Assembly (NCBI GenBank): GCA_002269645.1
Contig: NIVC01000197.1
Coordinates: 666,638 to 730,637, forward strand
From: Macrostomum lignano
Lineage: Eukaryota
DNA: 64,000 bases
Direction: 5' to 3'
Below the pieces are notes generated by a model, which did no database searches, was not told the origin of the DNA, and worked only from the letters and a program-made list of their open reading frames with translations. Below are positions 79 through 62,777 of the stretch, piece after piece. A program made the position numbers and the translations under genes. The stretch's first letter is position 1. Each line of letters begins with the position of its first letter.

Positions 79-2504
79 TGCGGCGCAAAAAATCAGTACT
101 AACAGCACGGCTTCTCAAAACACAATGAAGGAGAATTTTTCGTTTAGAATTCCTGGTCCCCCATCATAAATTCCATGGCGATATAAAAATAATCAAGTGC
201 ATGGTTCAACCAGAAGAGTCTGCAACAAACTGGTAGGGATTTTCCCACACTTCTTGCGTGACTGAAAGCAAACCGGCACTGCAGAGGCTGGTCTGGAGAC
301 CGTCAAGCATTGAATTAAAGCGGTTTCAGCTACAGCCAGATTAAAAGCCTACAATAGACTGGCAGCAAGATGCTACAGAGAAAGTCGAAGCAGGCAGAGG
401 CTTTTTGGCTGGCACGGATGCGGGACGGCGAGTCAGAGGCTGCACACTTGGCACTTTTGCCCCCCAGATTCTGGACAGCCAAGCTGGCTTACCCAGTATC
501 TGGGCCAAACGTTTCTGCGATGTTGCTCGCTTGCATTCGCTCCCGCATGGCGGCTTGGCTCTCCGGCTCCGTCTTTCATCCGCAGATTATGAAGCAGAAA
601 TATATGATTGTGTATTAACGAGTATTCCTGATCAGTATTTACACTATTGAATACAATATCTAGGCAATCCAAGAGTTAAATTGGTTTTCAATGAGAGTTG
701 ATTTCAATTTTTTAGCCTGAAACCACCACTCATTGCAGTTCACGGGAGGCTGGCCCGCTACATCCGCCACGATGACGCATTCTCGGCGCACAGTAGCTGT
801 TTTATGACTCCTTTCTTAGAAAACAATTGAATCTATCATTAAGTAGCCTAGCTGTGTTCTCGCTGTGCACTAATCAAATTATTGGCATGTAACACTAATA
901 ATTATGTTTGTTCATAGTTTGCAGTGTCTAAAAATGAAATCAGAAAAAATGTTGCCTATTATCTCAGTATTGCCTTTTCCCCTCTCTGTATATTGAAAAA
1001 TCATTTCTGTAATTTAAAATTGTACGCCCGGACCGCTGCATGCTCGCAAGTGCCGGAATCCCAGAACATGCTATACCTCTGTGACTCACCTGTGCTCTAC
1101 CAAGCAGGCTATTTCATTTTGGCGCCTCAGAGCTGTCTCCACAGGCCCCACTATGGACTGCTTGGCAACCGGGTGGAGCCTTGTAAATTCTGCACCCCAA
1201 CAATTATGAAATTTGCTTTCTGTTTATCGGGTACAACTTGATGGCTCCAATACGGTATTGTCGTTTTGTAGCACTTATTGGAGCAGTTGCTCCTTACTCT
1301 GCTTTCATTTTGCAGCAAAAGTCCTAACTTTTGTTTGTTTGTTTGTTATTTTGTTTATCTGACTAGCTTTCACGCTGCTGTTCTGTCTTTTGTCTTGGCC
1401 CAACGTAGATTCACTATTTTGAGCATGCCGGCCTGCACTGCCGTCAGTTGGCCACTTGGTTTGTCACTTAGAAATACAGAATATGAACGGGCTTGTGGAG
1501 TCTGTCCACTGTTCACTTTGCAGTTTATAGTAACTCAACACTTTTATTGCTTTAATCTGCCTCTCGCAACCCGAATCTACCTCTTACTCAAATCTACATT
1601 TTACCCAATTCTACCGCTTACCTAGTTCTACCGCTTACCCGAATCTACCCCTTACCCGAATGTACCTTTTACTCGTATCTACCTTTTCAGATACGAGTTA
1701 AAATTTCACAAAACTTGTGATTAATAATGGTTCGTAAAGTACCAGCAGGTCTACGATATCAAATTTAATTAGTTTACAAGCGGGTTTAAAACATAAGCTT
1801 TAATTTACAATTCAAAACAAAAATACAAGTTTGAATCTAACTATTCTACTGATTTCAGTAGGGTACTAAGAAAAATACGCTGAAAATGACTAAAGATATG
1901 ATCGTGATCTATAATAAAACTAATAACCCTACCACAATGATCCATGAAGATTGGGGAATTAACGCATTGGTATTCCTTCCTGAGCAGCTGGGCTTACCAC
2001 AACTGAGCAAAATAGGGAATTAATTATTTCAGCATTTCATCCCCTTCCAAGCAGCCAGATTCCAGCGTTCGTAATCCCCTCAGCTGCTTGGGCCTCCTGG
2101 ACTGCTCCCGCCTGCCATTCAATTCTGCTCTGCATTGTTCTCAAGCCGGAAATTCGCCACATCTGCCACAGGAATAAACCTTACTGGCCTCGGGCAGACA
2201 GCCTTGAAAAGCCCAGCAAAAATGCGGGATAGGCGCTTTGCAATAAATGACCGCACGCTGAGTTGTACGCTTGCCCAACTATCTAGAGATGAAAACTACA
2301 TGTATCTAGAGATGAAAATGTGTTTCAGTGAACACAGAAAACTGAACGAGTGGGTGGGCCAAAAGATTGCGATGCAATTACATGTATCATTTACATGTAC
2401 ATGCAGTCTTAGTGAGCGCTGCATGATGAATGGGGAAGAAATTTCTAGCAAGATAAGGACGGAGAGGTACAAGTACGAGCGTACATGTACGGAGAGTGGA
2501 AATA

Positions 2505-3085
2505 GAGAAGAGTGGAGAGGGAGAAGGGTGGAGAGGGAGAAGGGTGGAGAGGGAAAAGGGTGGAGAGGGAGAAGGGTGGAGAGGGAGATGGGTGGGAGGG
2601 AGATGGGTGGAGAGGGAGAAGGGTGGAGAGGGAGAAGGGTGGGAGGGAGATGGGTGGAGAGGGAGAAGGTTGGAGAGGGAGAAGGGTGGAGAAGGAGAAG
2701 GGTGGAGAGGGAGAAGGGTGGAGAGGGAGATGGGTGGAGAGGGAGAAGGGTGGAGAGGGAGATGGGTGGAGAGGGAGAAGGGTGGAGAGGGAGATGGGTG
2801 GAGAGGGAGAAGGGTGGAGAGGGAGAAGGGTGGAGAGGAAGAAGGGTGGAGAGGAAGATGGGTGGAGAGGGAGAAGGGTGGAGAGGGAGAAGGGTGGAGA
2901 GGGAGAAGGGTGGAGAGGGAGATGGGTGGGAGGGAGAAGGGTGGAGAGGAAGAAGGTTGGAGAGGGAGAAGGGTAGAGAAGGAGAAGGGTTGAGAGGGAG
3001 ATGGGTTGAGAGGGAGAAGGGTGAAGAGGGAGATGGGTGGGAGGATGATGGGAAGGTGGGAAAAGGGTGGGAAGGAGGTGGATGG
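2505..3085. repeat. Purine-rich minisatellite (ggagagggagaagggt, ~16-bp unit)
   Basis: Direct tandem copies; these explain the RE/G-rich and PLS-rich ORFs in the track. Confidence 0.95.
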
Positions 3086-3654
3086 TAGTACATGTAAACA
3101 TACTCGTACTGTTTAGTGGAAGCAATCAATATATTGTTTAGAAATGCCAGCAATTGAATCGAAATACAATCCGGCTAATCCGCGGGGCTATTGAGGTAAT
3201 CGGTGGGGATGTTCTGAACTTGCTTCTTGTGTTTCCTTGACAACAGTAAGTCAGTTTTGAGTTTCAATCAATCACTTGGCCAATGCCAAGAAATCTTGTT
3301 GTAATTGTGTCGCAGGCTGCATGTCTGGCATCTGAGTTCAGTGCACACATTTGCCTGGCAACGAGTGCCTTGAGGTGCTCAAAGATTTTCTTTTAGCTCG
3401 TACCCAAAATGCAGTCTGCTTGGAAAGGCGCTCGCCTTAGCAACTAATTGGCAGGCTAGAAAGGCAGACGGTCCCTAATTGCTTCTTTTGTTCGTAAAAA
3501 ATTACCGCGATTGGGAAGCTGTCAATTCTTCAAGTGGAGATCAGACAGCGGCACTGGGGAGTGAAAGGGGTCGACGTGTGAGGCAGTGAGACAGTGAAAT
3601 TGCTAGGTAGAGAATGCATGTAGGAGAGAACCGTTATGGACTGAGTAGGGACTC

Positions 3655-4752
3655 GGGAGAGACTGAGCAGAGACTCAGGACAGACTGAGTAGAGACTCAG
3701 GAGAGATTGAGTAGACTCAGGAGAGATTGATTAGACTCAGGAGAAACTGATTAGACTCAGGAGAGATTGAGTAGACTCAGGAGAGACTGAGCAGAGACTC
3801 AGGAGAGATTGAGTAGACTCAGGAGAGATTGAGTAGACTCAGGAGAGACTGAGCAGAGACCCAGGAGACACTGAGCAGAGACTCAGGAGAGATTGAGTAG
3901 ACTCAGGAGAGACTGAACAGAGACCCAGGAGACACAGAGCAGAGACTCAGGAGAGACTGAGTAGAGACTCAGGAGAGATTGAGTAGACTCAGGAGAGACT
4001 GAGCAGAGACTCAGGAGAGATTGAGTAGACTCAGGAGAGACTGAGCAGAGACTCAGGAGAGATTGAGTAGACTCAGGAGAGATTGATTAGACTCAGGAGA
4101 GACTGAGCAGAGACTCAGGAGAGATTGAGTAGACTCAGGAGAGATTGAGTAGACTCAGGAGAGATTGAGTAGACTCAGGAGAGACTGAGCAGAGACCCAG
4201 GAGACACTGAGCAGAGACTCAGGAGAGATTGAGTAGACTCAGGAGAGACTGAACAGAGACCCAGGAGACACAGAGCAGAGACTCAGGAGAGACTGAGTAG
4301 AGACTCAGGAGAGATTGAGTAGACTCAGGAGAGACTGAGCAGAGACTCAGGAGAGATTGAGTAGACTCAGGAGAGACTGAGCAGAGACTCAGGAGAGATT
4401 GAGTAGACTCAGGAGAGATTGATTAGACTCAGGAGAGACTGAGCAGAGACTCAGGAGAGATTGAGTAGACTCAGGAGAGATTGAGTAGACTCAGGAGAGA
4501 TTGATTAGACTCAGGAGAGATTGAGTAGACTCAGGAGAGATTGAGTAGACTCAGGAGAGATTGAGTAGACTCAGGAGAGATTGAGTAGACTCAGGAGAGA
4601 CTGAGCAGAGACTCAGGAGACACTGAGCAGACTCAGGAGAGATTGATTAGACTCAGGAGAGACTGAGCAGAGACTCAGGAGAGATTGAGTAGACTCAGGA
4701 GAGATTGAGTAGACTCAGGAGAGACTGAGCAGAGACCCAGGAGAGACTGAGA
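3655..4752. repeat. Minisatellite with 20-22-bp units (agactcaggagagattgagt / agactcaggagagactgagcag)
   Basis: About 50 tandem units with higher-order repetition of variants. Confidence 0.95.
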
Positions 4753-6783
4753 CGAAATCCAAGAGAAACTTAGGAGAAGCTCAAAGAGACTCAGCAGATA
4801 TGAATGAATGATAAAATTGAAGCTCGTTAAAGAGAAGCTTAACTAATCCCTGTGGATTGGCGCCAAAGCCAGTTGAGCTGCAAGTGACAAACTCCCGTTT
4901 AACGGGAAGCAGAATCCAGCTAATGCCGAGGGGATGCAGTGAAATGGTGTGGTAAAAATCGGATTAAAGGATTACTCTGAAGTATTTTTTGACGAGCCGG
5001 ACTCGAGCTCAATAAAAATTCACTTTTATAATCTCGGAAGAAAAGGGAAATCGATTGAAGATATCAATTGGCAAGCAATGTGTAATGAGGTGGCCCATGA
5101 ACTGATGCTCACTCTCACCTTGCCATCTGCCGGTGGTTAACAATGTCATTTATTTGCATCTTCAGAGCAGGCTTATCTGAAATTTCTTTGGCAGAAAGGA
5201 ACTGCCCGCATGGTGCGCTGTTGTGATGCATTATGATTAAGCGGCAGTGGGACATGCATAATTCATGCCAAATAATGCACACATTACAGCAAACTGGGGA
5301 GGTCTATGGGAGCTCCCCATCTCCATCGGCTCTCCTGGGGGAGGCAGAAGATGGCTATGAAGTCTAAAAGCCTTCATGAATTAGTGCATGCGTACAGACA
5401 CTCAACCAGACACTCAAGCGACGGGGAGACCCCAATAGAACTGAGTCAAAGTCACCGGGTTGCGATTGAAATTTTCAGCATTTTCAAATACATCGGATGA
5501 CCAGACAGTGGCTGGTTCCATGTAATCCGCCTTGCTGAACTTCAATTCCAGGGAGCAACATAGCTAGCTGCTGGTGACACAAGCACCAGAAGACCTTCCT
5601 AGAGGCTCTCCTAGAGCCTGTCGTCCAGGGCCTAGCGTAATGATTTCATTGGAGCAAACTCTGAGATTTTGTTCGTAAATTATACCATACTTATTATTAC
5701 ATGTACATGCAGTTTTTCAGATTCCTTTGAAAGACAAAGGCGACAAGGGCACATCTCGACAGTGCAGCTGTATTATTTTCTCAAGGCACTCAGATGCTTA
5801 CAGTGTTGATCTGTCCCTTCAACTTGAGCGATACAAGAGTTGACAAAGAAGCTACAACATACCGTGTAGTCTTTTTGGCTGAGCAGAGAGGAAAGAATAA
5901 ACATGAAATTAGACACTGCGCATCTCAGCTAGGAATAGCACAGAATTCAGTCAATTCCTTGGCCAACTGATATGCTGTTTATGTTTCCATCTCCGGTATC
6001 TGGCTTCTACGTGCATCAGGCATGGGTATCAAGGTCCCAACTGATGAGAAAGTATTGCAGATAATGAGGCATGCTCAATACAGGTAGCATATCATACATA
6101 CCCTGCGGCGACAAAACTTTTATTGACTTTCTGAAAACAGTCGATCTGCTGAGCTCAGACAGGCTGGAAACGTTTTTTTGACTCGCTTTTGAATGCTCGA
6201 ACTGACTGACACCTGGGGATAAAAGGCCACAAAGGGCTGACTCAAAGGGGTGAGTCAAAGCAGGTGTTTTCAGGTATAGGGGGATAAGAAGGACTTTGCA
6301 GCCTCACCAATCTGCAACATCGAATGCACAGAGAGGAGGACAAAGGATGCTGGAGAAGCTGGAGGTGAGTCGGGGGAAATTCTCCCCTTGGCTAGCGGTA
6401 AACACACGGGAATTCGATGAGTGCACGCAGGCCGCCTTTCCTCGGCTTTGAGAGCGGCAGGCTCTGCCCCTCCCCGAGCATAGGCTCCAGTCGCAATCGA
6501 TCTGAAAATGTCCCTAAAGACTGACAGGGAGAAGAAGGGACGCTTCTTCTAGTGGAAATCCCATCTACGCCTCTCTGTTTCTCTGACGAGGACAAAAGAC
6601 GGTTTGGCACAATCAAGCCTTGCAGCGTTAGGGAGCTTACGTGCGCTTTGACTCCGCCACAGCCTTCGCCATGATTAGAAAGACAGGATAATCTCGCCAT
6701 TATCAAAATTAGTTCCCTCTGCTTCTCCTTCGTTTGATAAGGACGTTTTGTTAGGCTTGTTTAGCTAATTTTTCGTCTAAATT

Positions 6784-7636
<853 letters not shown>

Positions 7637-8712
7637 GTAGGTAGGTAGGTACGAGTAGTAAGTGGAAGTCTGGAGTCTGTTAACCCCGAAATCCCACAGT
7701 CAGAAAGTGAGAGAGCGTGGAGTTTCTTCTCTCCGCTTCTCACTGTCGAAGCGGTGGCTTTTGATCTGTGCCTCAGAAAAAGTGTCCCATTCAGCGCTAA
7801 ATTTAGCAGCTCTGCAATCCACCCGGGCGGTCATCAGGGTGATGAATAGCGGAAATGAGTTCACACTGCTTCTGCGATTCCTGCCAGAATTGCTGGCGGC
7901 AGCATTGATAAAGAGAAGCTCACAGAGACCATCTCTTTCTTTCCGTTCTGTTCCAGCCACGTGCTATTGTATTCTCGATCAAGCACTTGCTGGAAATTAG
8001 GCGAGTAAACTGAATATTTAGGAGTCGCTGTTGACGGGACAATCCCAATCTATTCTCCGACAGGCTCAGAACAATTTTGAAAACTCATTCAAGAGACCCA
8101 ACGGGATCTCTTAGTAAACAAGCGCATACCGGCCTCACCTCAATGTCTACTCGCACAAGCTCTGCTTTGAAGCATTGAAATGTCAGTCTTAAGTCAGCTG
8201 TAGATCCATCAAAGGGAACAGGGGCCTTTGTGTTTGTTCCTTTCTATTCTTCGTTGGCTCGTATTACTTGCGTAATAATTACCAAACCTGATTTATGTCT
8301 AAACTCGTTTATACTTCTCTGAGTTGGACTCAGCGACAGGTATGTTTACTGTGATTCCTCTATACATGTAGGCTTTTCTGCTATTGAGCGCAAGATTTTT
8401 TTGTAGGCTTCACATTCCTGAGTGCGTGAGGTTCAAGGCACAAAAATAATTCCTCTATTCAGTTCAGCTACGCTTCTGCAAGTTTGAAACGGAATACAAT
8501 TACCAGCGCATCTCCTGGACAAATCGATCTTGTGTACTCAGCTCCCTGCAGTCATTGTCGCTAACCCCACGGATTGATTGGCCAGCCCCATTTCACCCTA
8601 TTGAACTCGGCCTTTAGCCAGTGCACCAAGCTCAAGCATAGTAAGAGGGAGCGAGACAGAGAGTAGACAAGCGGAGATCGCCAGGACCCTCCCTTCTCCC
8701 AGCTGGCTCTCA

Positions 8713-11700
8713 GTGAGTCGCCAGGTCGCAGCCATTCTGAGCGTACCTTTGCTAAGGGGCCACGACGAGAGCGGTCCCCAGGCGCCGGGCCTGCAAACCG
8801 GCTCAGCTATTTTCAGAGACCGCACCCGCGGCTCCTCCGTCTCCGGATTGCCATCTGCGTCCTCGCCGGGGTCTGCAGCGCTCGGCGGACGGCCCGGTCG
8901 GTCGTGGTCGGCCGCAGTCGGCGGAAGCAGCGGAATCGGTGGCGGTGGAGTCGGCGAAGAGGACTGGGAGGTGCGGATCGGTCGACCAAAGGATCAGTCG
9001 GTGGGATTCTTTGCCGCCAACGAGAGCAGCCTCGGGGGCGCCGGTGGTGGAGGCGGTGGCTTTGATGACAGCGACGAAGAAGAACGCTTGGTGAAGGCAA
9101 GTGCTTGTACATGTACTGCTTTACTATTCCTTGGAGTCGATTTAGTGCATGCGAGTTAAACGACTATTCCAAATGCTCATATGTAAGTGTGGATTTTCCA
9201 AACCATTTCCTGGGATATCATTATTATGCTGTACATAGATGTTGATACTTCCTATAGCTTACATTGCATACATGAGTCTTAAGTATTGTAACAGTTTATG
9301 TAAATTGACGTCATTTGCTGTACAGTCAGCACTCCGATGCAAAAAATACGCTACATATGTGCTTTTTAAAGAAGCTTTCTGTATTAGTCTTGGAATACAC
9401 ACACAAGGAGCACTGTAGTGCATTACAGGATGTAAAACTCAATGATCGAGTAATTTTTTGAAGGCCACTTTCTTGGAAAAATACACTGTGGAGATAGGAA
9501 AAAATTATCTTCACATAATCTCTTATTGAGTTATACCACAGTGGTCTTTGTCAGTTGTCGCAAGACCAGGTTTCTTCGGGTAGGTACAGTAGTATAGCTT
9601 GTCATGTTCCTCGCAACTGGCTCACTACTTCATCCGCCCTTACGTTCTTCAGCGCCAGGTGTACATCTGCGTAGTATTCATGAAGATCGGCGAGATAGAC
9701 ACCATCAAGGAGCAGTTCGCAGCGGATGTTCTAATCAAGGCCAAGTGGCGGGAGCCCGACCTGGACCACAAAAACATCCAACAGGGCAGGCTGGTGAGAA
9801 GCGAGCCTTTCTTCGAAAATCTTAGTACAGAACACAGTAAAGTTGAAGCGCAAGAGGTGCAAAAGTAGTCTTCAAAATGAAACGCTTCCCAGTTGAACTT
9901 TCCTAAAAATACTATTTTATTTGAGTCAAAACGATTTTTACTCAGTTCAACCTGCGGATGCCTTCTAGCCTAGCTAGACGCTTTTTTCCCAATCCCAATC
10001 CTAATCTCGAAATCCGAAAAATCTACAGAGCTACACACCAAATTAGGCCATGATTAGTCAGGATGGAATATGCTATGAAATGGCATAAATCGATCAGATT
10101 TCCATTTCTGACACACAAGTCGCTGGGATCGCCTCGACTAAAATCGCAAATCACGCAATCTAATTTGGCTTTGCGTGCAGCAAAGCCAATTTTCAGAGCT
10201 GCCGTGGGTGAGGCGAAATTATAACAAAAAATTCGCGTAAACAGTTTCTAATCGATAAACTCTCGCTGGTTGCATAGCTTATAAGCTTTAAATGAATTTA
10301 TTCAATCAGACAGTGGTAAAAAATTTTTACTTTGAATTTCAACATCATATACTGTTCTCAACATTCTAGGACTACGACTGGTCAAAAAGTTGGACCCCGA
10401 AGCTGTACATTGAGAACACTATCGGAGAAGGCAAGGAGCAGGTCTACCAGATGATTTCATTCAATGAAGTTGGTCACGCCTTCCTATTTGAAAAGCGGCG
10501 CGTCTCGGGTGTTTTCCTGGAAAATCTGGAGCTCAACCACTTCCCGTTTGATGTTCAGGTAAATGCATGAAGCCAGCACGATGGCTTGTTGGCCGAATAA
10601 GAGCTTTTGCATGAAATCGACGGGATCGTTATCTCTCTGAAAGGCTGTGCGACTTTTTAAAATCTGCTCACACGCCTACTCGGGGAGTATCCTAATATTT
10701 GCGAGGCAAACGCACGAGTCCGTGTGTTCTTAAGACGTTCTGTGCCCTGTTTCTGTGAAGGTGGATATAAAAGATGCGATGAATCCGTGTACCCATTACC
10801 CTCCCATTGGCATGATATCCGGGCTGGATGCTGCCTAGATGGAATGCTAGCTGAGTGAGCAGCAGAGTACTCCAACCCTCAAGTAAAAGAGCAGATGAGA
10901 AGTGGCATTAGCAACCTTACATGTATTTCTGGCAAGAACAACTAGAGATGGATAGTGGACAGTGGAAATGCATTTCTTAGGTTCATTGTATGCATTTAAA
11001 TTCAATGTGACACAAAATTTGCGCAAATAGAATAGAAAATGAGCTTTCACTACAGTTATAGACAAAAATCATGCTGACCTACTTAAAGTATAATCAGTAG
11101 TTTTTTATATCTTCAAGGACCTGACAATAACGGTGGCATCAAATCTGTCCTCAGCCGAGATTCGCCTGGTCAACGATCCCGACGAGCCCCACCGGATTAA
11201 CAAACAGTCGTTTGTTGGTGAGGAATTAAAACTCAATGAATTAATTCTTCGTTGACTTCCGCTATAAAAAGCCGCTGAAATTGAATAGTTAGCATTATAA
11301 TTTCTGTTTGAAATTTACAACTAAGGATATAAACCAGATAAACCCGGAAATTTTTTTGACTACGAACGAAATATTCATCAGTCTTTTAAAAATTCCACTA
11401 AGGTCTAACAAAGCTAAAAAACACTGAACTTCTCTAATCAACGCCTTAGACGAACAGGAGTGGTTTTTGTACAAGCACATCGACACGGAGCAGCGAGAGC
11501 TGGCCTGCGAGTACGCGGACCAGAGCTCCACCCGGCCTGCGCTGTCCGTGAAGTGTCGCGCCGCTCGAAGACCAGCTTATTTTATCTGGAATATTTTCCT
11601 CGTCACGGTGAGTAGAAGTGCTCCTTCTACTTTTGCTTCAAGTGCTTACCCTCTGACACTACATACAAATTCCATATTTGTATGAAGTTCAACCACTATT

Positions 11701-13592
11701 GAGTTCAGACTGAAGAAAATATTGAGTTATTTTACAGGTCCATTTTGTTGCGCAAAAAGTGTAAGCCCACAACTGTTCGATATGTTTTTATTTAATTATA
11801 TTGCTTGATACTTTTCAATCCATTAACTTCGTTAAAATTCAGTGATGAAAATGAAAAGTTTCGTGTCGCTTATTCATTTGGCAACTGAAACGTACCTGTC
11901 ATCATTAAATTTTGCTTGATTCGGAGTAGGACTCACATGTTAATTGGCAAGCTCGTATACCACAATACAACTACTACAATTGTTGCCAAACTTACCTTAC
12001 CAATGCCTTCTATCAACGCCAACAGTTCCTCATCTGCTCCTTGTCGTTGGTAACCTTCGCAGTGAAGAGGGACCTGCCGCAGAACCGATTGCAGCTGACG
12101 TTCACATTGGTGCTCACGCTGGTAGCATTCAAGTTTGTGGTGAACCAATGCTTGCCAAAGATTTCTTATCTCACGTATCTGGTAAGTTTTTTCGTGCACA
12201 GATAGCTCATAGCATCTAACAAGCTTTGAGATACGTGTTACATTATTGTGTGAAGCTTGGTGCAATTGTATTGTTGTATAATATAATAATAATTGATTAT
12301 ACCTGCCCTAATGGGCACATGTGCAACCGACAACTCAGCCGCAGCTATTGCGCGGCGCATCTAAGGCTACATACGGCTGTTCAGTGCAAGTACTGGGGGG
12401 TCGCCACACACCCTCAATTACCCCAGCTAATGCTGGCACCCATTTTATAACTGGGTGAACTGAAGCAATGCATGCAGAGTTACAGGTAAGTGTCTTGCTT
12501 GAGGGCACAAATTGTTTCGAGGGGATCGAGAATCGAACCCCCGACCTTTTAGTCGTGAGCCCGATGCTCTAAAACCCCTCATGTTGCATAAAATGTGAAT
12601 GTTGTGCTACGATTATTGCAAGTACAAGCCTTATAGGAAATGTCAATAGCAACAGAAAGCAATTTAAAACTGCAGGACAAGTACGTGATCAGCAGCCTGT
12701 TCATTCTGACGCTAATCTGTCTGTGGCACGGCCTAATTGTGGTCATTGACAAGATCATCCTCGAACAGTTTGGCATGGTGTGGGACAGTCTGGAAACTTA
12801 CGTAATCATTGGCATGGCATTCAGCTATGTGGCCTACAACGTTGGCTTTGTCATCATGATTTTTTGCGTGGTAAGCTCGCACGGTGGAGCGGTCTTGTCA
12901 CTGGAATGTACTAAGTAAAATAGAATAATGTGCTCAAAGCTGGAAGCCTAAAAATACTACCTAAATAAAGTCGTTCGTTTAAATTCGATGAAAAACAATA
13001 TAACACTTTACAGGCCTGCAAGAGGCGACGAATAATGAAGCAGAAGGACAAGGAATACACGGTGAGCAAGCCTCAATACGATATTGCACCTACCAGCGCC
13101 TAAAGTGCTAAGTTGGGCAGCTTTTACGAGCGTAACTTTTTAAAAGACAAACTCTGTCAATTTTACAATTTTACAGTCGTCCTCTTTTACAATCTAAATT
13201 TGCCCAACAAACAATAGTTTTGCATAAAAATGTTTAATGATTTAACTTTGTACTCGTAATTAATGTCTACTTCCTCCATATCCGGTTTGATCGCAAGAGG
13301 CTCCAATGCAGAAGTTCCGATTAAACGGTCCCCAGCTTGCTAACTCGTAGCTTGCTGGTTATAATGCAGAGAAGATATTCTCCCTTTTTATATCGCTTTT
13401 AAGCACCGGTGAAGAGTTTTCAGCGCTATCAAAAAGTAATGTAGACTCGCAATAGCTAACCTATATTTTCAGGAGCGAGTGAAAATGCAGGTGCGGTCCA
13501 AGGGAATGCGAACTAAACGGATGCTACAACAGACTCAGCTGCTACACGAGGTCAAGGAGAATGGGCAGTCCACGGCGGTTGCGTTCATTTGA
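8713..13592 (+). CDS. Cys-less (Pro-loop) pentameric ligand-gated ion channel subunit; 5' start unresolved
   Basis: Exons ~8713..9096, 9653..9793, 10370..10558, 11118..11217, 11450..11607, 12026..12181, 12676..12870, 13014..13061, 13473..13592 splice in frame. Translation includes VYICVVFMKIGEIDTIKEQFAADV, WTPKLYIEN, GVFLENLELNHFPFDVQDL (Pro-loop, no Cys pair), RRPAYFIWNIFL (M1), NRLQLTFTLVLTLVAFKF (M2), LPKISYLTYLDKY (M2-M3, like GLIC LPKTPYMTY) and M4. A candidate upstream ATG mini-exon at 8295..8339 is uncertain. Confidence 0.9.
12283..12580 (-). mobile_element. tRNA-derived SINE, family 1 (in a pLGIC intron)
   Basis: The minus strand has a tRNA-like head with B box GGTTCGATTC, a body with gtgccctcaagcaagacactt, and an ATT tail. 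The 3' part matches the copy at 33591-33823. Confidence 0.8.
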
Positions 13593-13899
13593 GTTCGACG
13601 AAATGACTGCTGTGGTATTCATGTCTGACTTGAGAAATTGTGACAAGAGCTGCGCGATCATGCAATGTACGAGGAACAATTACCCATAGTTCAATCAGTT
13701 TCGGCAAATGGGTGTCTTAACAGCGGGAAGGATTTCTCTATAGCTACAAACCGCAAAAAATCGCAGATATTGTACCCTCAGGGAGCTTGAAATCTTGGCG
13801 CGACTGGGATCATAATCAGCCCCTGAACTCAACCAGCAGTCTGTTGCTCAAGATGTTGCTCAAGAACATCAGAAGGACTACATCAGCACGCTTTCTGAT

Positions 13900-14190
13900 G
13901 CTAGCAAAAATGCAGAAGGTTTAACTTCCTGCTTGAACAGATCAGTCTCGCAGTGAAGGAGAAGCATATTAGTCGAATTTATTCATCAGAAGCGACTGTT
14001 TTCTCGGTTTTACTTCAGCTCTGCGACCCACAGAGTGTCGTTGAAAGAGAATATTCTCTGTTTTCCGTCGGTTAAAACCCTGCAAAACGTTACACGGCGG
14101 GTTCAGTGAGAAACTGGGCTTGACAACACCGCCTTTCTGAGTCTCCGTATATCGAAGCTGAATGCCTTGAAGAAAGCAACCTCTGGTGAC
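13900..14190 (+). mobile_element. Degenerate THAP9/P-element-like transposase fragment
   Basis: Frameshifted translation FLLEQISL...YSSEATVFSVLLQL / LKENILCFPSVKTLQNVTRRFSEKLG-DNTAFLSLRISKLN resembles the 'Y..L....L.LPS..TL' N-terminal region of P/THAP9 transposases. Recognised by eye only. Confidence 0.45.
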
Positions 14191-15235
14191 ATCGACTTAT
14201 TACTATTGCAGAAGGTCCAAGATTCAACTTATTATCCAAGATTCTATAAATATATACGAGTACAATGAGACTATAAAATTGAATATTTAGTCAGAATTAG
14301 ACAGGAAAACTGGAATTGTTCCACGGGAAAGATTACAGGGCCATTACGCTCGTACGTGTATAGGTAGGCTAGGCCCCTATATCATGTAGGTACGCCCCAC
14401 AGAGGTTTCTCATCCAGGCTCTACGAGCTAGTTACAAGGACCACTGTAGGTCCTTGGCTAGTTATAGAGAAATCTTTGCCAGGAGGTGAGTCAATGTGTA
14501 TTTAACTTTAAAATAACTTCAAAATTGCTCATTTAAACATTTTTTCTTTTTCCTCATAACAAATAAATTTAATTTTCGGCCTGGTTGTCTCGCTCTAAGC
14601 TAGCTATTGACTCAATACACAAGCTTCTATAAATCTTATTGGGTTATCGTAGTTTTAGCTAACTTTAATTGTAACTGTACTCTCACGAATAGATCCTGTC
14701 GCTTCGGAAACAAGCTTATACAATTGACTTACATGCAGGATGCAGCTCAAATGCGAGCTTTTGTCGAAACGTTGACAATCTCCAATGCCAACCGTTTGTC
14801 TGCGTCAGTTATTTTCTTTTTTGTCCGGTCCTACAGCTAGCAGAACCGTTCTTATATGTTTAGCCGTACCTACAGCTGAGACTCCGCTTGCAACTTTAGT
14901 CACTGCGAATTGCCCTCATTTGACTTTTTCCGAGGCACCTGCTATACACCAATTGGCTTTGAACCCGAATCTCTACTGATTAAACTTCAAACAACAACGC
15001 AGCTCTTTACTGTCCATAAACAGTAAGCTCACATATGCCGCGCGCGCTGTCAGTGCAACTAAATTTCAGGCACCAGCAACTGCATCACACGACACACGCA
15101 ATATTCATTTTACAAATAAAAGATAATTAAATCGATTAAATTTTCAAATGTTTTTTTGAAGTTCAATGTATTTCCGATAGCATCATTGCAGACTTCAAGC
15201 GACACTCAGTCAATTGCAGAGCGTACTTGCAGATC

Positions 15236-33303: not shown

Positions 33304-41712
<8,409 letters not shown>

Positions 41713-45817: not shown

Positions 45818-45855
45818 GCCGAGCTGATGGGGACGGTGCGTTGAGGACTTCTGCA

Positions 45856-49272: not shown

Positions 49273-49755
<483 letters not shown>

Positions 49756-53328: not shown

Positions 53329-53733
53329 ATGCAGTCGCACATTTTCATCAGCCTGTGCCTTGGCCTGGCCGCGGCAACCGTCGCCGTGTCGGGTGCCTCC
53401 ATCGGCAACTACGAGATGTCGAAGCGGCAGACGGACGCCTGGAGCGGCCACAAGCTCGAGGTGCCGATCAAGTGGCGCAAGCGTGGCCCAGAGCTCATCA
53501 TTGACCGGCTAGACAAACGCGGCCCCGAGATGCTGCTCCAGCGCCACTTGTCTGGCAAGCGATTCCACAAGCGCGGCCCGGAGCTCATCATCGACCGGCT
53601 AGACAAGCGCGGCCCGGAGCTCATCATTGACCGGCTGGACAAACGTGGCCCCGAGATGCTGCTCCAGCGTCACTTGTCTGGCAAGCGATTCCACAAGCGC
53701 GGCCCAGAGCTCATCATCGACCGGCTGGACTGA
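53329..53733 (+). CDS. Secreted multi-copy (neuro)peptide precursor, 134 aa
   Basis: Signal peptide MQSHIFISLCLGLAAATVAVSG. KR/RKR-flanked peptides: QTDAWSGHKLEVPIKW, GPELIIDRLD x4, GPEMLLQRHLSG x2 (amidation Gly) and FH x2. GC3-rich codons, with only synonymous differences between repeats. Confidence 0.9.
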   Translation: MQSHIFISLCLGLAAATVAVSGASIGNYEMSKRQTDAWSGHKLEVPIKWRKRGPELIIDRLDKRGPEMLLQRHLSGKRFHKRGPELIIDRLDKRGPELIIDRLDKRGPEMLLQRHLSGKRFHKRGPELIIDRLD

Positions 53734-53826: not shown

Positions 53827-53832
53827 AATAAA
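53827..53832 (+). terminator. Candidate polyadenylation signal (AATAAA) of precursor 1
   Basis: AATAAA ~95 nt after the stop codon. Confidence 0.45.
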
Positions 53833-56800
53833 TATACCCTTTAGCTTAAGGCATCGTGCTTGCACTTCTGATATACCATCTTGAGTGGCTGATAGCAAAA
53901 GCTAGACTGGTTCAGTAACAATTCACAAACATTAACGTGTGCCCATGAGCTATGCAACTTTTACTTAAAGAAGTCAGCAAACAAGCCACATATTCAAACA
54001 CTGCGAGTAGTGTATTTCTGGTGGTTACTCTGCGGTCAGTGTTACTGATTTTGTAAGGGGAGGGTCTGTAAAACTACAAAAAATATCGGCGGCTAAGGCT
54101 TTTAGTCACGGATAGCTCTGTCGGCCATCCGTTAAAAATTTACTTTTAACTTCATACGATAGAAAAACCTTCCGTAAAAGTGATTTTGTCACTGGACGAG
54201 TGACATTCAATGCAAACCTCGATGGGCCACTCAATACATTTGCATGCATGCTATTTTCAGTTCAGTAGTAAGTTAAACTGAACCATTTAAATGTATTTTT
54301 AAGACAAGACTCATTTATTTACTCTTACCCCCCTTAAACCCTCAAACTCCACACTGAACCTCTGCTTCAGTCTAAATCTGCCATGTACATTTTAGTGGCT
54401 AATGTACATTATGTCTAAATCTGCCATGTACATTTTAGTGGCTAATGTACATTATGGCTGAACCAATACCAATTAGCAAGCTGTTTACGCCTGCAAGCTT
54501 GGCTTCTAAACTTATCAGTCATTTCAGCTGCTATTCTTGTATGTATTATGTATTATGTATTGTGATAAATAGGCAATTAGATAATAGCATGCACGGTAAG
54601 CAATTAATTAGGCCCTAGACAAACCTACTTGGAGCGTTTGGAGATTTTAAAGCTATTAATCCTAATCGCCTATCGCCGGTCGGCGAGTTCTACCAGTCTT
54701 TCTCCAATAGCCGCAGGTACAGTACAAGAAAATAAAGAACACGAGAGAACACAAACCGAAAGATTTAGAGAGTGATAATCCTATATGATACAACTGATAA
54801 TTGGCTAGACGATTTAATTTGATTATTCAGGCTACAGGATTCAAGCAATTCGCGGCGCAGATAATTAGACTGATGATAACGAATAATAACGATTAATAAT
54901 AATGATTATATTACGCACTGACAAGCGGATCTCAGCTTGAAGAAGAAGAAGGAGGCACCGAACACAGGACCACGGAGAAAGACTCCTAACCCCTGGCCTA
55001 AGCCAGAACCTACTCTCAAACGAGAGCCCTGCCGAATCGACCGTTCAACGGAGTACCGACTGAATTCTATCGGCACTGCCCTTCAGTGTAACACTGAGGC
55101 CCTCGGGGTCGAGGCCGCGTACTTGATCAGATCCGACAGTCTCTATCTAACCGCGCTTGATAGCGACGACGTCAGACAAGGATGCCGAATCGTTACGCTA
55201 TAAGACTGAAGCGGTTGGGCGGGGAACAAAAACACGGACCGGGGGTGATGAATTCAGGCGCCTCAAAGCGCGAACCAACAAGAGAGGAGAAATCGGGCCA
55301 CCGGCCGGGAAGCTGGACAAGACAAAACCGGGGAAAGAGAGGCGAGAAGTGAGATCCGATTGCCAAATACACTTTCATATATAGTCAGAGTCACAAGCCC
55401 TCAAAACCCCCCTCAAGCCGGGTGGTGGTCGTCTGGCCGGCCGCTTGCTTAAGCCGAATTGCACCGTGCCCGCGGCGCCGGGTAGAATTGAAACTTGCCG
55501 CGTGCCAGGGTCCAGGCCGGTTCTGATTGGCTGGCCGCGCAAAGCTGGGGTTCGCAGACAAACTCAATCCTCCGCTGAGTCACAAATTTGGCGTCTAACT
55601 CTAACCTGTTTACACAAAATTGATTCTAACTAACAAGGAAAAAGTACACCAAAAACGTATGACTAAACTAAAGCAAAATAACAATTCAATAACAATATAG
55701 AAACGAATGCAGTCAATTTACAACAAAATACACGCAAAGATGCTCACACTACAGTATTCTTCTTTGCTACTGAACTGAAAGTAGAAAGCTGTTTTGCTAA
55801 TTATATATGCCTGAGTGGCCCATCTAGTTTTTCTAGTATCCGTGCACAAACCCGAGAAGTTATAAATGCCTCGAGAAAGTTTTCTAAAAATCTGCGAGGT
55901 CAGTTGGCATCGGATTAACAACGTCCGCCTGGAAGTCGGACTGGGAGACATTCGAATATTGAGCTAAGCATAGGCTAAGATGTAACAGAAACAGCTGGAA
56001 CGAGAAGGAATTGCATGTTATTTTAAAGAATAACTTAAGTCTTATTCAACTCCTAATCGCAAGATACTCAGGTCAGTTTTTACCGACTCACTGTGTGTCA
56101 AGATTGCCTGGCCAGGGTATGCTACTATACTCCCATTGACTGCAGCGGGTTGTTTTTGTTTCTGTACGCGTATCTTTCTTGCCACCAAACGCTTGGCTAG
56201 CTAAGTTGGGGCTCAGGAGCCCACAAATATATGGTAAAACTGGACGGCCGGCCTCCAGTCTTGGACACGTCTCATTCGTCTGTGCCACCTCGGGAGCCAC
56301 TTCCCATGGAAAATACTCGTAGCTACTCGAACACTTGCAATCTGACTTCGTCATCAGAAAGATCATCAGGGACCTCTTGCTTACTGCAACCGGTACCAGC
56401 TCTGCATTTCCTAAGGGAGTTTTTCAAGCGTAAAAAGCTTTGAGGTTACTTGCAGTAGTCACTTGCTAAAAGATACAAGCTATACTGTTGACTTTGCAGA
56501 GAAAATGTTTCCGCTTTTGCGCTTCTATTCGCTTAAAAATAATTTCATTTAAAGCAAGTCGTTTCGGAATTGAAGGGCTGGGAGATGTGCAAAAATAGTG
56601 AAGCAGAGGGTGCTTGTCCTCGTGCTCAATGGGGGCGGAGGCAGTTTTAGAGCAGTTTCCCTACTGCAACAGGCGATTGGCCCGGGAAGTGAAGGAGAGA
56701 AGGTCTACCATCCCCCAGTGCGACTTCTCCGAGGAATAAATTTCTCCAAAACGGGGCGCTGCGTGGGAGTCGCTGCTGTTGCTGTTTCTATCGCTGACAC

Positions 56801-57558: not shown

Positions 57559-57610
57559 ATGTATGATCTTAAATTTCCTCTTATCCATTGCCTCAGCAGG
57601 CAAAAGGAAA

Positions 57611-57901
57611 ATGTCAGCTTGGCTCCCAGTTCTCTTGGGCCTAGTGCTCCTTGTCACTGTGTCAGCTGCTCCGGCCGCCAACGCCGACAAGCTTCAGGCT
57701 GCCTCGGGCCATCGGATGAAGCGGCAGACGGACGCGTGGAACGGGCACATCATCGATCTTGGCCGCAAACGTCGCCGCTGGACCAGCAGCGAAGCCGTCG
57801 TCGAATCGCCGCGTTGGCGTCGCGTCCCCTCGCGCTTGGGACCGCGCCGCGGATGGCTGCACGACAACGACGGCGACCTCTTGGTTATGGAAGACTATTG
57901 A
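57611..57901 (+). CDS. Secreted peptide precursor 2, 96 aa, paralog of precursor 1
   Basis: Signal peptide MSAWLPVLLGLVLLVTVSA; KR-QTDAWNGHIIDLG-RKRRR, predicting pQTDAWNGHIIDL-amide. Acceptor CTCAG ends at 57596; candidate donor of a non-coding exon at 56864 (GTAAGC). Confidence 0.82.
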   Translation: MSAWLPVLLGLVLLVTVSAAPAANADKLQAASGHRMKRQTDAWNGHIIDLGRKRRRWTSSEAVVESPRWRRVPSRLGPRRGWLHDNDGDLLVMEDY

Positions 57902-58374: not shown

Positions 58375-58590
58375 TAGAGGGGCAGAACAGCTCAGCGGTA
58401 ACGACTGACTCTCGCGCCACCGACCCCTGGTTCGATTCCGTGCGCGGCCCGCATTCATTGGGGGCTTGTCGTGGAAAGTCAAAGAGCCGCTGTGCACCCT
58501 GTGTGAGCGTGTGCATGAGGGCGTGCCTGCGTACAGTATTGGCGCCCAAAACAGCGAAGCAATGAACGCAAGTTCTCAATGAATACAAGA
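58375..58590 (+). mobile_element. tRNA-derived SINE, family 2
   Basis: A-box-like AGCTCAGCGGTA, B box GGTTCGATTCC, and body gccgctgtgcaccctgtgtgagcgtgtg shared with the copies at 60.4-60.8 kb. Confidence 0.7.
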
Positions 58591-59137
58591 ACAGATCCAA
58601 TGTCAGGAGTGCAAGATGGCGATGTCCAAAAATAACATTGCTCCAGTATGCTCGCAGTCTCAGTCAACAATAGGACACTTGCATGTTTACACTGAGAAAG
58701 CTGGTGAAGAGGTCCGCAAGTGACTATCATTTTACCGACGCGGATGCCCCCGGACATAGCTACTCACTACGCGAAAGGAACTTCTGTATACCTCAGGCCT
58801 CTGCGATGATTCTTCAAATTTGCAGTAAACTGCTCATACATGTAGTGAAGCGTCCTTCAAAGCGACCTGCTGCTCCATCGGCAACTCCAGCTGACGCTGA
58901 CGCTGCAGGCACCCTATTCACCGACTGCCTGCTGGCTGTGATTCTTACGATTCTTCGGTTTAAGACGCGTCTTGTGATGTTGTTTGTAAAGATATTCTAT
59001 ATTGTTTTCTAATTACCGGTATATTTTCAACGGCCTACTTTGCTGTTGCATTTTGCACCAAGAGCAGTAAAGTGTTAGAAACACTGAGTAGCTGTCACGG
59101 TACTGCCACACTACCCCTTGATGCTCACTCCCTTTTT

Positions 59138-59138
<1 letters not shown>

Positions 59139-59173
<35 letters not shown>

Positions 59174-59425
59174 CTCTTTCTCTCTCTCTCCTCTCTCTCT
59201 TTCCCTCTCTCTCTCTCGGTTCGATCTTATTCTTATGCTCGTAGAAGCCCCTTCGGGTCATCAACCGATAACTAAAGTTAGTGACAACCTAGCCTAACCT
59301 AACCTTACCTAACCTAATCTAACCTAACTTAACCTAACCTTACCTTACCTTACCTAACCTTACCTTACCTTACCTTACCTTACCTTACCTTACCTTACCT
59401 TACCTTACCTTACCTAAACGAACCT
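59139..59425. repeat. (CT)n tract at 59139-59217 and (CCTAA)/(CCTTA)n pentamer tract at 59288-59425
   Basis: Directly visible. Confidence 0.9.
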
Positions 59426-60094: not shown

Positions 60095-62777
60095 ATGAAC
60101 AGTCTGGAGTACCGCCTTGCCGCTCTGGCTGACAAGGAGCAGGTGTCCGTGTGCCACGGGGACGATCCCGGCACCATCTACAATGGCCTGGACTATGTGC
60201 CGCAGAGGTACCGCATGGCCCTGTCCAGCAGTAACAAAATCTGCGGCCTCTGCTTTGACAGGCAAGCTGGTAGAGTGGTGAGTGGAACTCGCCGATCAAA
60301 AGAGTCAACCAACATTTGCTGAATGTTTCACAACAAACTGACTACGAGCCGTATTCGTACCAGGGTTGCGGGCATCCTGGTCAAACGTCCACAGTGTCCA
60401 TCGTCTCAAAATCAGAGCTGAGGCAGTTTTGGCCATTCCCCTGACTCCTGAGTGCATGTGCTTCGAGTGCGCAGATAGTGTACACAGACACAAACTCATT
60501 CACACGTTCGCACAGCGTGTACAATGGCCTGACGACCTCTGGTTCGACTCCGTGTGTGGCCGAATTCATTTCCGGGCTTGTGCACGACAGTAGGCCGGCG
60601 GTTGTCGTTCGATCCGCACCCATGAGGGCCAGCCTCCAAGGCACAGAGACTGTACATGCCTGACGATTAGAAAATCGGGGCCGCTGTGCACCCTGTGTGA
60701 GCGTGTGTGCGAGTGCGTGCCTGTGTACAGTACGCTCGTATTAACGCGCTTGTATGCGTGCTCAGGAGTCACACGGACGGGCAGAATTGCCTCAGCGCTT
60801 TCAGTTCAGAGTGCCCGCAGCTTGCCTGCGAGTGTTTATTTTTCTAATCAATCAGTCAGTCAGTCAGTCAGTCAGTCCATTCTTCACAAGTTCAGGTGGC
60901 CTACGGTCAAATCTTCGTATTCGACGGCGGGCGCCACATGCTGCTGACAGGCCTGCGGGTGCATCCGCTCTACCAGGGCCGCGGAATCGCCACCGAGCTT
61001 CGCAACTTTCTCTGCCGCGAGACGCGCAAGAAATTTCCGGAAGTGAGCCCGGAAGTTCGATTCGGCGTCTACAAGCCGCAGTTCAGCAGCGCGGAGTTCT
61101 TCGCTCAGAACTTGGACTACACCCTGATCTCGAAGAGGGTGAGAAATTTTATTGAGGCGGCAAAATATCCCCTATTTCTAACTCTTATAAGCATAACTGG
61201 GGCATTTTGTTATTTCTCTTTTCAGCACTATTACGTGGTAAGCCGCACGGAAGTTAAAGTTGTTTCAATATTTTGATTGGAGTCAAGGGAGACGCAGAGA
61301 GACATGGTGAGACACTGTGAGACACTGTGAGACACTGTGAGACACGTTGAGACACTGTGAGACATTGTGAGACACTGTGAGACATGGTGAGACACTCTGA
61401 GACACTGTGATACATGGTGAGACATTGTGAGACACTGTGAGACACTGTGAAACACTGTGAGACACTGAGACACTGTGAGACACTGTGATACATGGTGAGA
61501 AACTGTGAGACACTGTGAGACACTGTGAGACACTGAGACACTGTGAGACACTGTGAGACGCTGAGACACTGTGAGACACTGTGATACATGGTGAGACACG
61601 GTGAGACACGGTGAGACACTGTGAGACATGGTGAGACACTCTGAGACACTGTGAAACACTATGAGACACTTACAGTCTCACAATAGTCAACTTCACAATG
61701 CCTCCCTCGCTAGACGGAGTTTCCCCTGTCCCAGCTGTCGCAGCTCCGTGACGCAATCTCCAGAGCCCGCAGCGCATCCGAGCTGCGCCATGCTCAGGAG
61801 GTCGTGTGGACCACCCGCAGCCGCCTGTACACCGCGATGCTGAAGGACTCGGCATTTCAGCAACTGTATAGTGGCTCCGTTATCTCCATCAACTTTGAGC
61901 TACTTGAACTGGACGAGTCTAACCTTGCTGTGCTGCCGGGAGACAGCGGAAGCGGCCCCGAAGGCGATGACAACGCTCCGAACAGCGTCATGGTCGCCAC
62001 GAACGACGGGCAGCTGGTGCTGGGGTACGGAAGCACTTTGTACTGCCGGAAGGGCCTGCGCGCGGACTTTGACTTGTACTGCAATGGACTGGATAGGGGT
62101 GAGACCGGCCTGGATTGGTTGAATTGTGACCGGATTGAGATGTGATGATGGATGTACTTACTCACTGGCCTGGGACATTGGGGCGCCAACCGACAGGAGC
62201 GGCCCACAAAGAGATAGGGGCGCCTACCAAAAGACAGGGGGGCCAACCAAGTGACAGGGGCGCCCACCAACTGACAGGGGCGCCAACCAAGAGACAAGGG
62301 CGCCAACCAAGTGACAGGGGCGCCAACCAAGAGACAAGGGCGCCAACCAAGAGACAGAGGCACCCACCAAGAGGCCAAATATTTGCACCCATTGAGGTTG
62401 CAGCCCGTCCAATTAAAGTTCCCGCACTGTTTTTCAGTCCCTACATATAATTGCGAATTCTTTGCGAATTTTCAGCGGACTTCTCATCCGAGACCCTAGC
62501 TGGTCTGTGCTCAAGCCTGGTGATCGGCTTCCTGTCTCAGCTTCTAGCCACCGATGGTGAGCAACTGGCCGCAATTCCTGAGCAATCGTTGTCGTTGTTC
62601 GTTTCGCTCGACTGTTTCAGCGGCACCAGTTTGAGTCCGTGCTCAAACTGCGATTTGGAGTCGCGATTGTCTGCCAGTCTCCAAAGCCTCATCAGCGAGG
62701 AGCTGATGCTCAGGCATCCGTTCTATTCCGAGGGCTGCCCCTACGCTCTGCTGAAGAGGAGAGTGCGATTGGATTGA
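60095..62777 (+). CDS. GNAT acetyltransferase, NAT16/histidine N-acetyltransferase-like, 5 exons, ~367 aa
   Basis: Exons 60095..60277, 60896..61138, 61226..61237, 61735..62098, 62476..62777 join in frame. IYNGLDYVPQRY; acetyl-CoA motif A GLRVHPLYQGRGIA; the C-terminal half ('ELLELDESNLAVL') resembles the NAT16-type extension. Confidence 0.82.
60416..60796. mobile_element. Two SINE family-2 copies in opposite orientation inside intron 1 of the GNAT gene
   Basis: Plus copy ~60535-60800 (B box CTGGTTCGACTCC, body gccgctgtgcaccctg); minus copy ~60416-60529. Confidence 0.7.
61287..61668. repeat. 10-bp minisatellite (gagacactgt)
   Basis: Fills GNAT intron 3. Confidence 0.95.
62180..62370. repeat. 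~20-bp minisatellite (gggcgccaaccaagagacag)
   Basis: About nine units in GNAT intron 4. Confidence 0.88.

Follow-up and report, generated by a model that had tools for sequence, protein, structure and literature searches.

What process leaves short words of the form TA-CGAG-TA, in several graded lengths, at unrelated places in an animal genome? The question is raised by a 64,000-nt stretch of Macrostomum DNA on contig NIVC01000197.1 (the whole of this stretch is referred to as the window), in which the first-pass annotation had read such words as footprints of excised mariner transposons. What we find are insertions, bounded by TA and made up of transposon-end bases, at sites formerly occupied by a single TA, and the inserted bases, CGAG, CGAGC or CGAGCC, are prefixes of the TA-bounded end of a relic lying in the same genome. 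We conclude that the words are probably excision scars of TA-targeting Tc1/mariner elements, with a probability of roughly 0.85. The earlier proposal is supported by the enrichment of the words, by their graded prefix series, by five empty states and by the lack of any wider motif.

Word counts in the window were compared with those of 100–200 dinucleotide shuffles. The 10-mer TACGAGCGTA/TACGCTCGTA has nine exact matches, at 2474, 7328, 13125, 14345, 15693, 22212, 25578, 26305 and 60731, which are the positions first listed for it; 0.01 are expected, and none of 100 shuffles attains nine. The 8-mer TACGAGTA/TACTCGTA, announced as present at least 14 times, occurs 15 times (one copy had been missed, and all the coordinates given were correct) against 0.86 expected and a highest shuffle count of 3. 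Thirteen of these 8-mers are independent, the matches at 7376, 7470 and 7572 being a single event multiplied by the ~100-bp unit of a CATA array. The variant words are also present, TACGAGCTA four times (about 0.2 expected) and TACGAGCCGTA once, and the series has two further members, TACGAGCCTA at 42089 and TACGAGCCCGTA at 27388.

In an unbiased k-mer scan of the array-masked sequence (49 kb), TACGAGCGTA ranks first of all 10-mers (7 against 0.03 expected) and TACGAGTA third of the 8-mers (10 against 0.9), behind a second word, TACATGTA, and a poly-C/G run. Over all counts, the 10-mer is found 7–9 times for 0.01–0.04 expected and the 8-mer 10–15 times for 0.5–0.9. The over-representation is extreme and specific to the TA..TA flanks, which are found on 9 of the 22 CGAGCG cores; among the 256 possible 4-nt cores, the largest TA..TA excess is that of CATG and CGAG/CTCG. 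Explanations by composition, by chance or by an artefact of sequencing or assembly (adapter remnants, for instance) are practically negligible: the observed counts were reached in none of the 100–200 shuffles, the inserts lie exactly at TA and keep the phase of repeats, and the same word classes are found in the Macrostomum lignano contig NIVC01001686.1 (positions 40001-63726, the segment used for comparison).

The CGAG-class sites and the features attached to them are as follows.

1670-1677, minus strand: TA-CGAG-TA (8-mer), exact match, unique flanks
2474-2483, plus strand: TA-CGAGCG-TA (10-mer), right TA common to TACATGTA at 2482
3101-3108, minus strand: TA-CGAG-TA, exact match
3394-3402, minus strand: TA-CGAGC-TA (9-mer), exact match
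7328-7337, minus strand: TA-CGAGCG-TA in a (CATA)n array, phase regained on deleting 8 nt
7376-7383, plus strand: TA-CGAG-TA in (CATA)n, phase regained on deleting 6 nt
7470-7477, plus strand: copy of the 7376 scar via the ~100-bp array unit
7572-7579, plus strand: copy of the 7376 scar via the array unit
7650-7657, plus strand: TA-CGAG-TA at the end of (GGTA)n, phase regained on deletion
13125-13134, plus strand: TA-CGAGCG-TA in an intron of the Cys-loop channel gene
13251-13258, minus strand: TA-CGAG-TA, exact match
14255-14262, plus strand: TA-CGAG-TA, exact match
14345-14354, minus strand: TA-CGAGCG-TA, TA common to TACGTGTA at 14353
14422-14430, plus strand: TA-CGAGC-TA, exact match
15693-15702, minus strand: TA-CGAGCG-TA, exact match
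15780-15787, plus strand: TA-CGAG-TA, exact match
17483-17490, plus strand: TA-CGAG-TA, exact match
21459-21466, plus strand: TA-CGAG-TA, exact match
21993-22000, minus strand: TA-CGAG-TA, exact match
22212-22221, plus strand: TA-CGAGCG-TA, followed by a 36-nt flank duplication (22218-22286)
22249-22257, minus strand: TA-CGAGC-TA at the junction of the 36-nt duplication
25578-25587, plus strand: TA-CGAGCG-TA, exact match
25686-25695, plus strand: probable decayed 10-mer, TACGAGCATA (CpG to CpA)
26305-26314, plus strand: TA-CGAGCG-TA, exact match
26696-26703, plus strand: TA-CGAG-TA, exact match
27388-27399, plus strand: TA-CGAGCC-CG-TA (12-mer), from the listing of TACGAG
28877-28884, plus strand: TA-CGAG-TA, exact match
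42089-42098, minus strand: TA-CGAGCC-TA, from the listing of TACGAG
49343-49351, minus strand: TA-CGAGC-TA in (GTTA)n, phase regained on deleting 7 nt
56314-56321, minus strand: TA-CGAG-TA, exact match
58531-58540, plus strand: empty-site homologue gtacagTAtt in a second copy of a repeat resembling a short interspersed nuclear element (SINE)
59234-59243, minus strand: probable decayed 10-mer, TACGAGCATA
60343-60353, plus strand: TA-CGAGCCG-TA (11-mer; 5+2 or 6+1)
60731-60740, minus strand: TA-CGAGCG-TA in a SINE-like copy, an 8-nt insertion compared with two other copies

The word TACGAGTTA is found twice (1692-1700 and 13341-13349) and may be a decayed variant or an 8-mer scar plus one T; between the copy at 1692 and the scar at 1670-1677, which face each other, there are 14 bp. 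Several scars lie less than 150 nt apart (13125/13251, 14255/14345/14422, 15693/15780, 22212/22249 and 7328/7376); by a rough estimate with weak statistics, there are about 6 such close pairs in the first 30 kb for about 2.7 expected, which would fit the local hopping of Tc1/mariner elements.

The 31 sites form a graded series, in which TA is followed by CGAG, CGAGC or CGAGCC, then by nothing, G or CG, and then by TA; the duplicated TA bounds the insert in all of them. When every TACGAG of the window is sorted by the number of bases kept on the left and on the right, one side retains 4–6 element bases and the other 0–2: 15 sites are of the type 4+0, four are 5+0, one is 6+0, nine are 4+2 or 5+1, one is 5+2 or 6+1 and one is 6+2. 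None of the 31 keeps at least three bases on both sides, the full junction TACGAGCTCGTA has no occurrence in the window, and no variant of the CGAGG type is seen among the scars. Where the fifth base can be assigned, it is C at seven sites, T at two and never G or A. The words that retain fewer than four bases (TACGTA, TACGCGTA, TACGATA and TACGATCGTA) are not enriched in the window, so that the minimum kept is 4 nt; this agrees with the earlier remark that the footprints are longer than the textbook 3 nt. The retained length does not match the known stagger of 2–3 nt, which counts against the textbook geometry and not against the scar mechanism.

A single-TA empty state can be deduced at five independent sites, four in microsatellites and one in a repeat family. 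Deleting the insert so as to leave one TA restores a perfect repeat phase at 49343 in (GTTA)n, at 7328 and 7376 in (CATA)n and at 7650 in (GGTA)n. The fifth case is the pair of SINE-like copies that had been put forward as an empty-site control, and the two copies do read as described. This control first looked weak, because the 53-bp homology between the two copies of the window ends exactly at the TA. In a third copy, on NIVC01001686.1, the repeat runs beyond the TA (TTGGCGC..., then CTCAGGAG...GAATTGCCTCAGCGCT), and the three-way alignment confirms that the copy at 60664-60800 bears CGCTCGTA, a clean 8-nt insertion at TA by comparison with both other copies.

The repeat itself is common to the window (58380-58545 and 60520-60800) and to the NIVC01001686.1 segment (2600-2790), and has a B-box-like GGTTCGAnTCC. 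ARAGORN finds no tRNA in it and Rfam no tRNA or SINE model, which is why we only call it SINE-like.

The flanks of the scars are mutually unrelated and have the base composition of ordinary TA sites; they show neither a wider motif nor any detectable target-site preference beyond TA. This bears on the idea that the words are a short cis-regulatory or protein-binding motif under selection. They are indeed short words, palindromic in part, that cluster in the first half of the window, which is rich in genes. However, both orientations are represented, the surroundings show no wider conservation, the words occur as clean insertions inside microsatellites and a SINE-like repeat, and their length series matches a transposon end. 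A check for a binding site gave the same answer, as no site lies in the blocks conserved with M. lignano. We consider a selected motif to be a remote prospect.

The end that matches the length series belongs to an element which, judging from its sequence, appears to be a decayed mariner.

19156-20405 including the TAs, minus strand: decayed mariner relic (element 19158-20403, 1246 bp), TA on both sides

Its boundaries are TA/CGAGCC (19156) and CCCCTCG/TA (20397-20405), in the context caac-TA/CGAGCCGGTTCTCATTAAGT...GCCCCTCG/TA-tcaa; the first agrees with the TA/CGAGC reported earlier. Mariners are about 1.3 kb long with terminal inverted repeats of about 28–30 bp, and the relic, with 1246 bp and a TA on each side, has the length and the flanks of a mariner. 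The remnant of its transposase is scattered over three frames of the minus strand, with many stops, and the broken reading frame makes the D,D(34)D spacing illegible. A frame-stitched translation matches the SETMAR/Hsmar1 transposase in two collinear stretches (E 0.0019), and a single-frame piece matches Mos1 in the equivalent region. The ends read CGAGCCGGTT... and, reverse-complemented, CGAGGGGCAA...; no terminal inverted repeat is reported between these two ends of the relic, which could result from decay or from genuinely different ends. The 20403 end (CGA/GGGGCAATGCAAA) is in what we take to be the canonical mariner register, NNA/GG, while at the 19158 end (CGAGCC/GGTT) the conserved GGTT...TTAAGT block presumably lies about 3 nt further in. 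All the long scar variants are explained by the 19158 end only.

We regard the relic as a relative of the source of the scars and not as the source itself, because it is far more decayed than they are. No second copy was found by blastn or tblastn in the window or the NIVC01001686.1 segment, the window contains no other TA-flanked inverted-repeat element, and a protein search with the decayed transposase gave no match. Metagenome matches to the end sequence TACGAGCCGGTTNNNATTAAGT were put down to chance, since the three contigs concerned are AT-rich and coding, homologous to one another and unrelated to mariner.

The scars would thus come from a mariner lineage with ends beginning CGAG(CC), and we infer the link to this particular family from the shared end. 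Such an element would insert at a TA and duplicate it; upon excision the transposase would leave bases of the element ends protruding from the flanks as 3' overhangs, and the break would then be sealed by end joining, the residue being two TAs with 4–6 bases of one end and 0–2 of the other. Each scar has 4 bases or more from one of the ends, and half of them need 5–6; from this we infer that the cut must have been made at least 4 nt inside the element at one end or more. Our working model places a nick in the non-transferred strand immediately 5' of the conserved GGT block, at each of the two ends, which would give overhangs of 6 nt (CGAGCC) at an end like that at 19158 and of 3 nt (CGA) at the canonical end. 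These overhangs could pair in the register C:G, G.A, A.G, G:C, which would yield TACGAGTA, or in the register G:C, A.G, G.A, C:G with 1-nt fills, which would yield TACGAGCGTA; each register has two Watson–Crick pairs around a tandem G.A mismatch. The model fits the observation that the long side never exceeds 6 nt and is always CGAGC(C), that the short side never exceeds 2 nt, and that CGAGG variants are lacking. With CGAGCC at both ends, a symmetric family would fit the scar data almost as well.

Two other geometries were rejected. The words predicted by a symmetric stagger of 2 or 3 nt with both overhangs kept are absent, and a symmetric 5-nt overhang joined at perfect GC microhomology predicts TACGAGCTCGTA, which has no occurrence either.

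Several observations weigh against the excision of mariner elements as the origin of the words. No allele, haplotype or relative with a filled site was obtained, so excision is deduced and not observed, and neither the window nor the NIVC01001686.1 segment contains an intact or young member of the family. While nearly all the scars are intact, the one copy of the element still resident shows heavy decay, and the ratio of scars to copies in the window, about 30:1, is unusually high. Pfam does not recognise the relic, whose assignment to mariner stands on an E value of about 0.002; its two ends share only the 4 nt CGAG, and the CGAGG form of the 20403 end is found in no scar. Last, characterised Tc1/mariner transposases cut 2–3 nt inside the element, and the products of that geometry, TACGCGTA and TACGATCGTA, are absent from the window, so that we know of no precedent for the cut that is needed here. 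As regards the number of scars, it may be that they accrue as neutral indels while the elements move on, in which case a small, very mobile population would leave more scars than copies.

The state of preservation of the scars gives an indication of their age. The 10-mer has nine exact copies and five with one mismatch, where 1.8 are expected by chance (an excess of about 3); two of the mismatches are CpG to CpA. Had a steady state lasted long, one-mismatch copies would be about as numerous as exact ones, and these small numbers therefore suggest that the transposon activity is recent. The same count for the 8-mer is uninformative, its background being high.

This preservation is also one of the points in favour of host-directed or developmentally programmed elimination, in which the elements would stay in the germline and be excised, as in ciliates, from the somatic DNA that made up most of the sequenced material. 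It would account for the fact that almost all scars are undecayed, for their very high density, and for the absence from the window of excisable copies when a relic with non-matching ends is kept. On the contrary, the same TA flanks bear differing fixed forms (8-, 9-, 10-, 11- and 12-mers), one scar was copied three times with its array unit, and two look decayed by CpG transitions. For these reasons the scars are best seen as inherited alleles that are not remade in each generation, which makes this explanation highly improbable. Two more novel versions of the excision reading may be distinguished. The milder one, the likelier of the two though still rather doubtful, is that a mariner lineage cuts its non-transferred strand 4–6 nt inside the element, a geometry not known from any Tc1/mariner transposase, and that a large share of the small indels in these genomes comes from its excision. 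The bolder proposal, a wholesale removal of Tc1/mariner elements in Macrostomum that is controlled and possibly programmed by the host, of which the near-pristine scars would be the trace instead of a selfish by-product, seems to us very unlikely.

The first-pass annotation was right about the CGAG class and overlooked an equally strong one, that of TACATGTA. This self-complementary word occurs 18 times for 0.6 expected, in unrelated contexts and never in arrays, and ranks first among the 8-mers of the array-masked window by over-representation.

2297-2304: TACATGTA
2379-2386: TACATGTA
2392-2399: TACATGTA
2482-2489: TACATGTA, TA common to the 10-mer at 2474
3089-3096: TACATGTA
5698-5705: TACATGTA
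8363-8370: TACATGTA
9108-9115: TACATGTA
10918-10925: TACATGTA
17038-17045: TACATGTA
21775-21782: TACATGTA
22060-22067: TACATGTA
22112-22119: TACATGTA
25918-25925: TACATGTA
25948-25955: TACATGTA
26021-26028: TACATGTA, left flank duplicated before it (GCGCCGCAGGTA twice)
40796-40803: TACATGTA
58837-58844: TACATGTA

In the window, no length variants of TACATGTA are seen and the one-sided form TACATA is not enriched. A second TA-targeting family has probably left this word behind as its scar; the word could be a 2+2 scar of the Tc1/Tc3 type or, equally, the product of two self-complementary CATG overhangs. The two classes cluster together, with 36 scars for 1877 non-array TA sites between 1 and 32 kb against 6 for 947 between 32 and 64 kb, and scars occupy about 1–2% of the TA sites of the gene-rich first 32 kb. 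There are two compound scars with a common TA, at 2474-2489 (TACGAGCGTACATGTA) and 14345-14360 (TACGCTCGTACGTGTA). The word TACGTGTA is found three times for 0.5 expected, twice beside a 10-mer (its sites include 14345-14360, 25578-25599 and 21879-21886), and may be a third end type or a decayed TACATGTA.

Two flank duplications directly adjoin scars, at 22218-22286 (a 36-nt unit present 1.9 times) and at 25991-26022 (GCGCCGCAGGTA twice), and resemble the templated insertions of error-prone end joining.

Untidy repair of this sort is what one might expect if the words were remnants of MITEs (miniature inverted-repeat transposable elements) with CGAG...CTCG ends, whose interior was lost by replication slippage or break repair, and a transposase cut and a deletion whose ends happen to fall in the termini cannot be told apart by sequence alone. 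However, such deletions predict a continuum of remnant sizes, with sequence from the interior of the element, whereas all 31 sites keep 4–8 nt in a fixed pattern of one long and one short side. No TACGAG...CTCGTA pair of the window encloses element-like sequence, and the self-complementary TACATGTA, devoid of any length variant, is not what this process would give either. We therefore hold the origin by MITE deletion to be unlikely.

The words recur in the NIVC01001686.1 segment: TACATGTA is found 7 times for 0.22 expected and is the top non-satellite 8-mer there, TACGAGTA 3 times for 0.46, TACGAGCCGTA once for 0.01 and TACAGTA 8 times for 2.2. The enrichment is clear for TACATGTA and only modest for the CGAG words. 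The segment also shares genes with the window. The best match of the 14-3-3 exon (22984-23307) is an M. lignano protein, with 86% identity, and NIVC01001686.1 encodes a matching 14-3-3 as well as the same neighbouring Cys-loop channel gene, the two being syntenic (window 9600-24613, segment 2382-15006). The proteins encoded by the syntenic exons are 90–100% identical and their DNA 72–85%, and the introns are unalignable, so synonymous sites are near saturation; judging from these alignments, the window and NIVC01001686.1 would represent different Macrostomum species or a very old duplicate. A search for same-species alleles with the 14-3-3 and Cys-loop channel exons returned only M. lignano relatives at 86–91% protein identity. 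Since the introns do not align, a cross-species test of empty sites was possible only via the shared repeat. The phospholipase-B-like gene that lies between the channel and 14-3-3 genes in the window has no aligned counterpart at the NIVC01001686.1 locus.

The genes recognised in the window are the following.

About 9600-13600, plus strand: Cys-loop channel gene
About 15500-17400, minus strand: phospholipase-B-like gene
22984-24613, plus strand: 14-3-3 gene
33304, plus strand: P2X exon
53329-53733, plus strand: open reading frame (ORF) 1, resembling a secreted-peptide precursor, with a signal peptide and, within a 126-nt tandem unit, the KR-flanked repeats GPELIIDRLD and GPEMLLQRHLSG
About 57610-57901, plus strand: ORF 2, resembling a secreted-peptide precursor, with the motif KRQTDAW(S/N)GH in common with ORF 1

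Both precursor-like ORFs may be neuropeptide genes; the protein of the 53329-53733 ORF, looked up by exact match, has no record in the collection searched. About 23% of the window consists of 31 mini- and microsatellite arrays with periods of 2–43 nt and lengths of up to 1.2 kb (for example 2505-3044, 3650-4751, 34508-35620, 36959-38176, 44141-45152 and 62895-63853). They cluster in the second half, which is GC-richer and has few scars.

Excision scars are known as a kind from textbooks, and are usually documented locus by locus, in experiments. What appears to be new here is their density, about 1–2% of TA sites across a gene-rich stretch of 32 kb, their rank as top k-mer outliers of a genome region, their asymmetric spectrum of 4–8 nt, and their recurrence in a second Macrostomum sequence, NIVC01001686.1, which we read as a distant genome. 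A literature search with the scar words, and with Macrostomum combined with mariner or footprint, found no prior description; the Macrostomum assembly paper does not analyse repeat content in detail. In these 64 kb of a wild-type genome, no k-mer signal is stronger than that of the scars. If this holds genome-wide, the mobility of cut-and-paste transposons in these flatworms would have been much higher than their low resident copy number implies, and excision followed by end joining would be a quantitatively important origin of small insertions at TA sites, among them those of introns and microsatellites. The scar spectrum would then also read out how the germline of a model animal for regeneration repairs double-strand breaks with defined 3' overhangs. 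It hints, moreover, that a mariner lineage may cleave at a non-canonical offset, and the words offer a simple marker with which past transposon activity can be dated and mapped after the elements are lost.

How do these scars compare with those of known systems? In Caenorhabditis elegans, the classical scar of Tc1 and Tc3 is TACATGTA, which results from a 2-nt stagger and consists of CA and TG. This word is identical to the strongest 8-mer outlier of the window, and is also an outlier in the M. lignano contig, but the window yielded no Tc1-like element ending in CA...TG.

More generally, the excision of Tc1/mariner elements leaves element bases as 3' overhangs, from which end joining makes several TA-flanked forms of scar (bioRxiv 10.1101/659086; PMC3770610). 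In the case of Sleeping Beauty, whose footprint is TAC(A/T)GTA, identical 3' overhangs pair in register around a central mismatch, and minor forms are also produced (bioRxiv 10.1101/659086). The duplicated TA and the terminal element bases are common to Sleeping Beauty and to the sites described here; Sleeping Beauty, however, keeps 3 nt (CAG/CTG), whereas 4–8 nt beginning with CGAG and unequally shared between the two sides are kept in the window.

Excision of Mos1 proceeds through staggered breaks of 3 nt (PMC4505599). Mos1, Himar1 and Hsmar1 resemble the relic in their transposase, in the duplication of TA, in a length of about 1.25 kb and in the canonical register of one of its ends. Their 3-nt stagger predicts TA-CGA-TA and TACGATCGTA, neither of which is enriched here. 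Compared with the terminal repeats that we take to be theirs, the other end of the relic has about 3 extra terminal bases before GGTT.

In the Stowaway MITE and Osmar (mariner-like) system, non-autonomous relatives leave the TA duplication and a few end bases upon excision (PMC4561436). This is a plant system with ends of the CTCC.. type, for which no comparable genome-wide density of scars is reported in the literature searched. In ciliates, excision is precise and programmed and leaves one TA. The internal eliminated sequences of Paramecium are TA-bounded, derive from Tc1/mariner-like elements and are removed massively (PMC3464196). Unlike in Paramecium, extra bases remain at the sites of the window, and the alleles look inherited.

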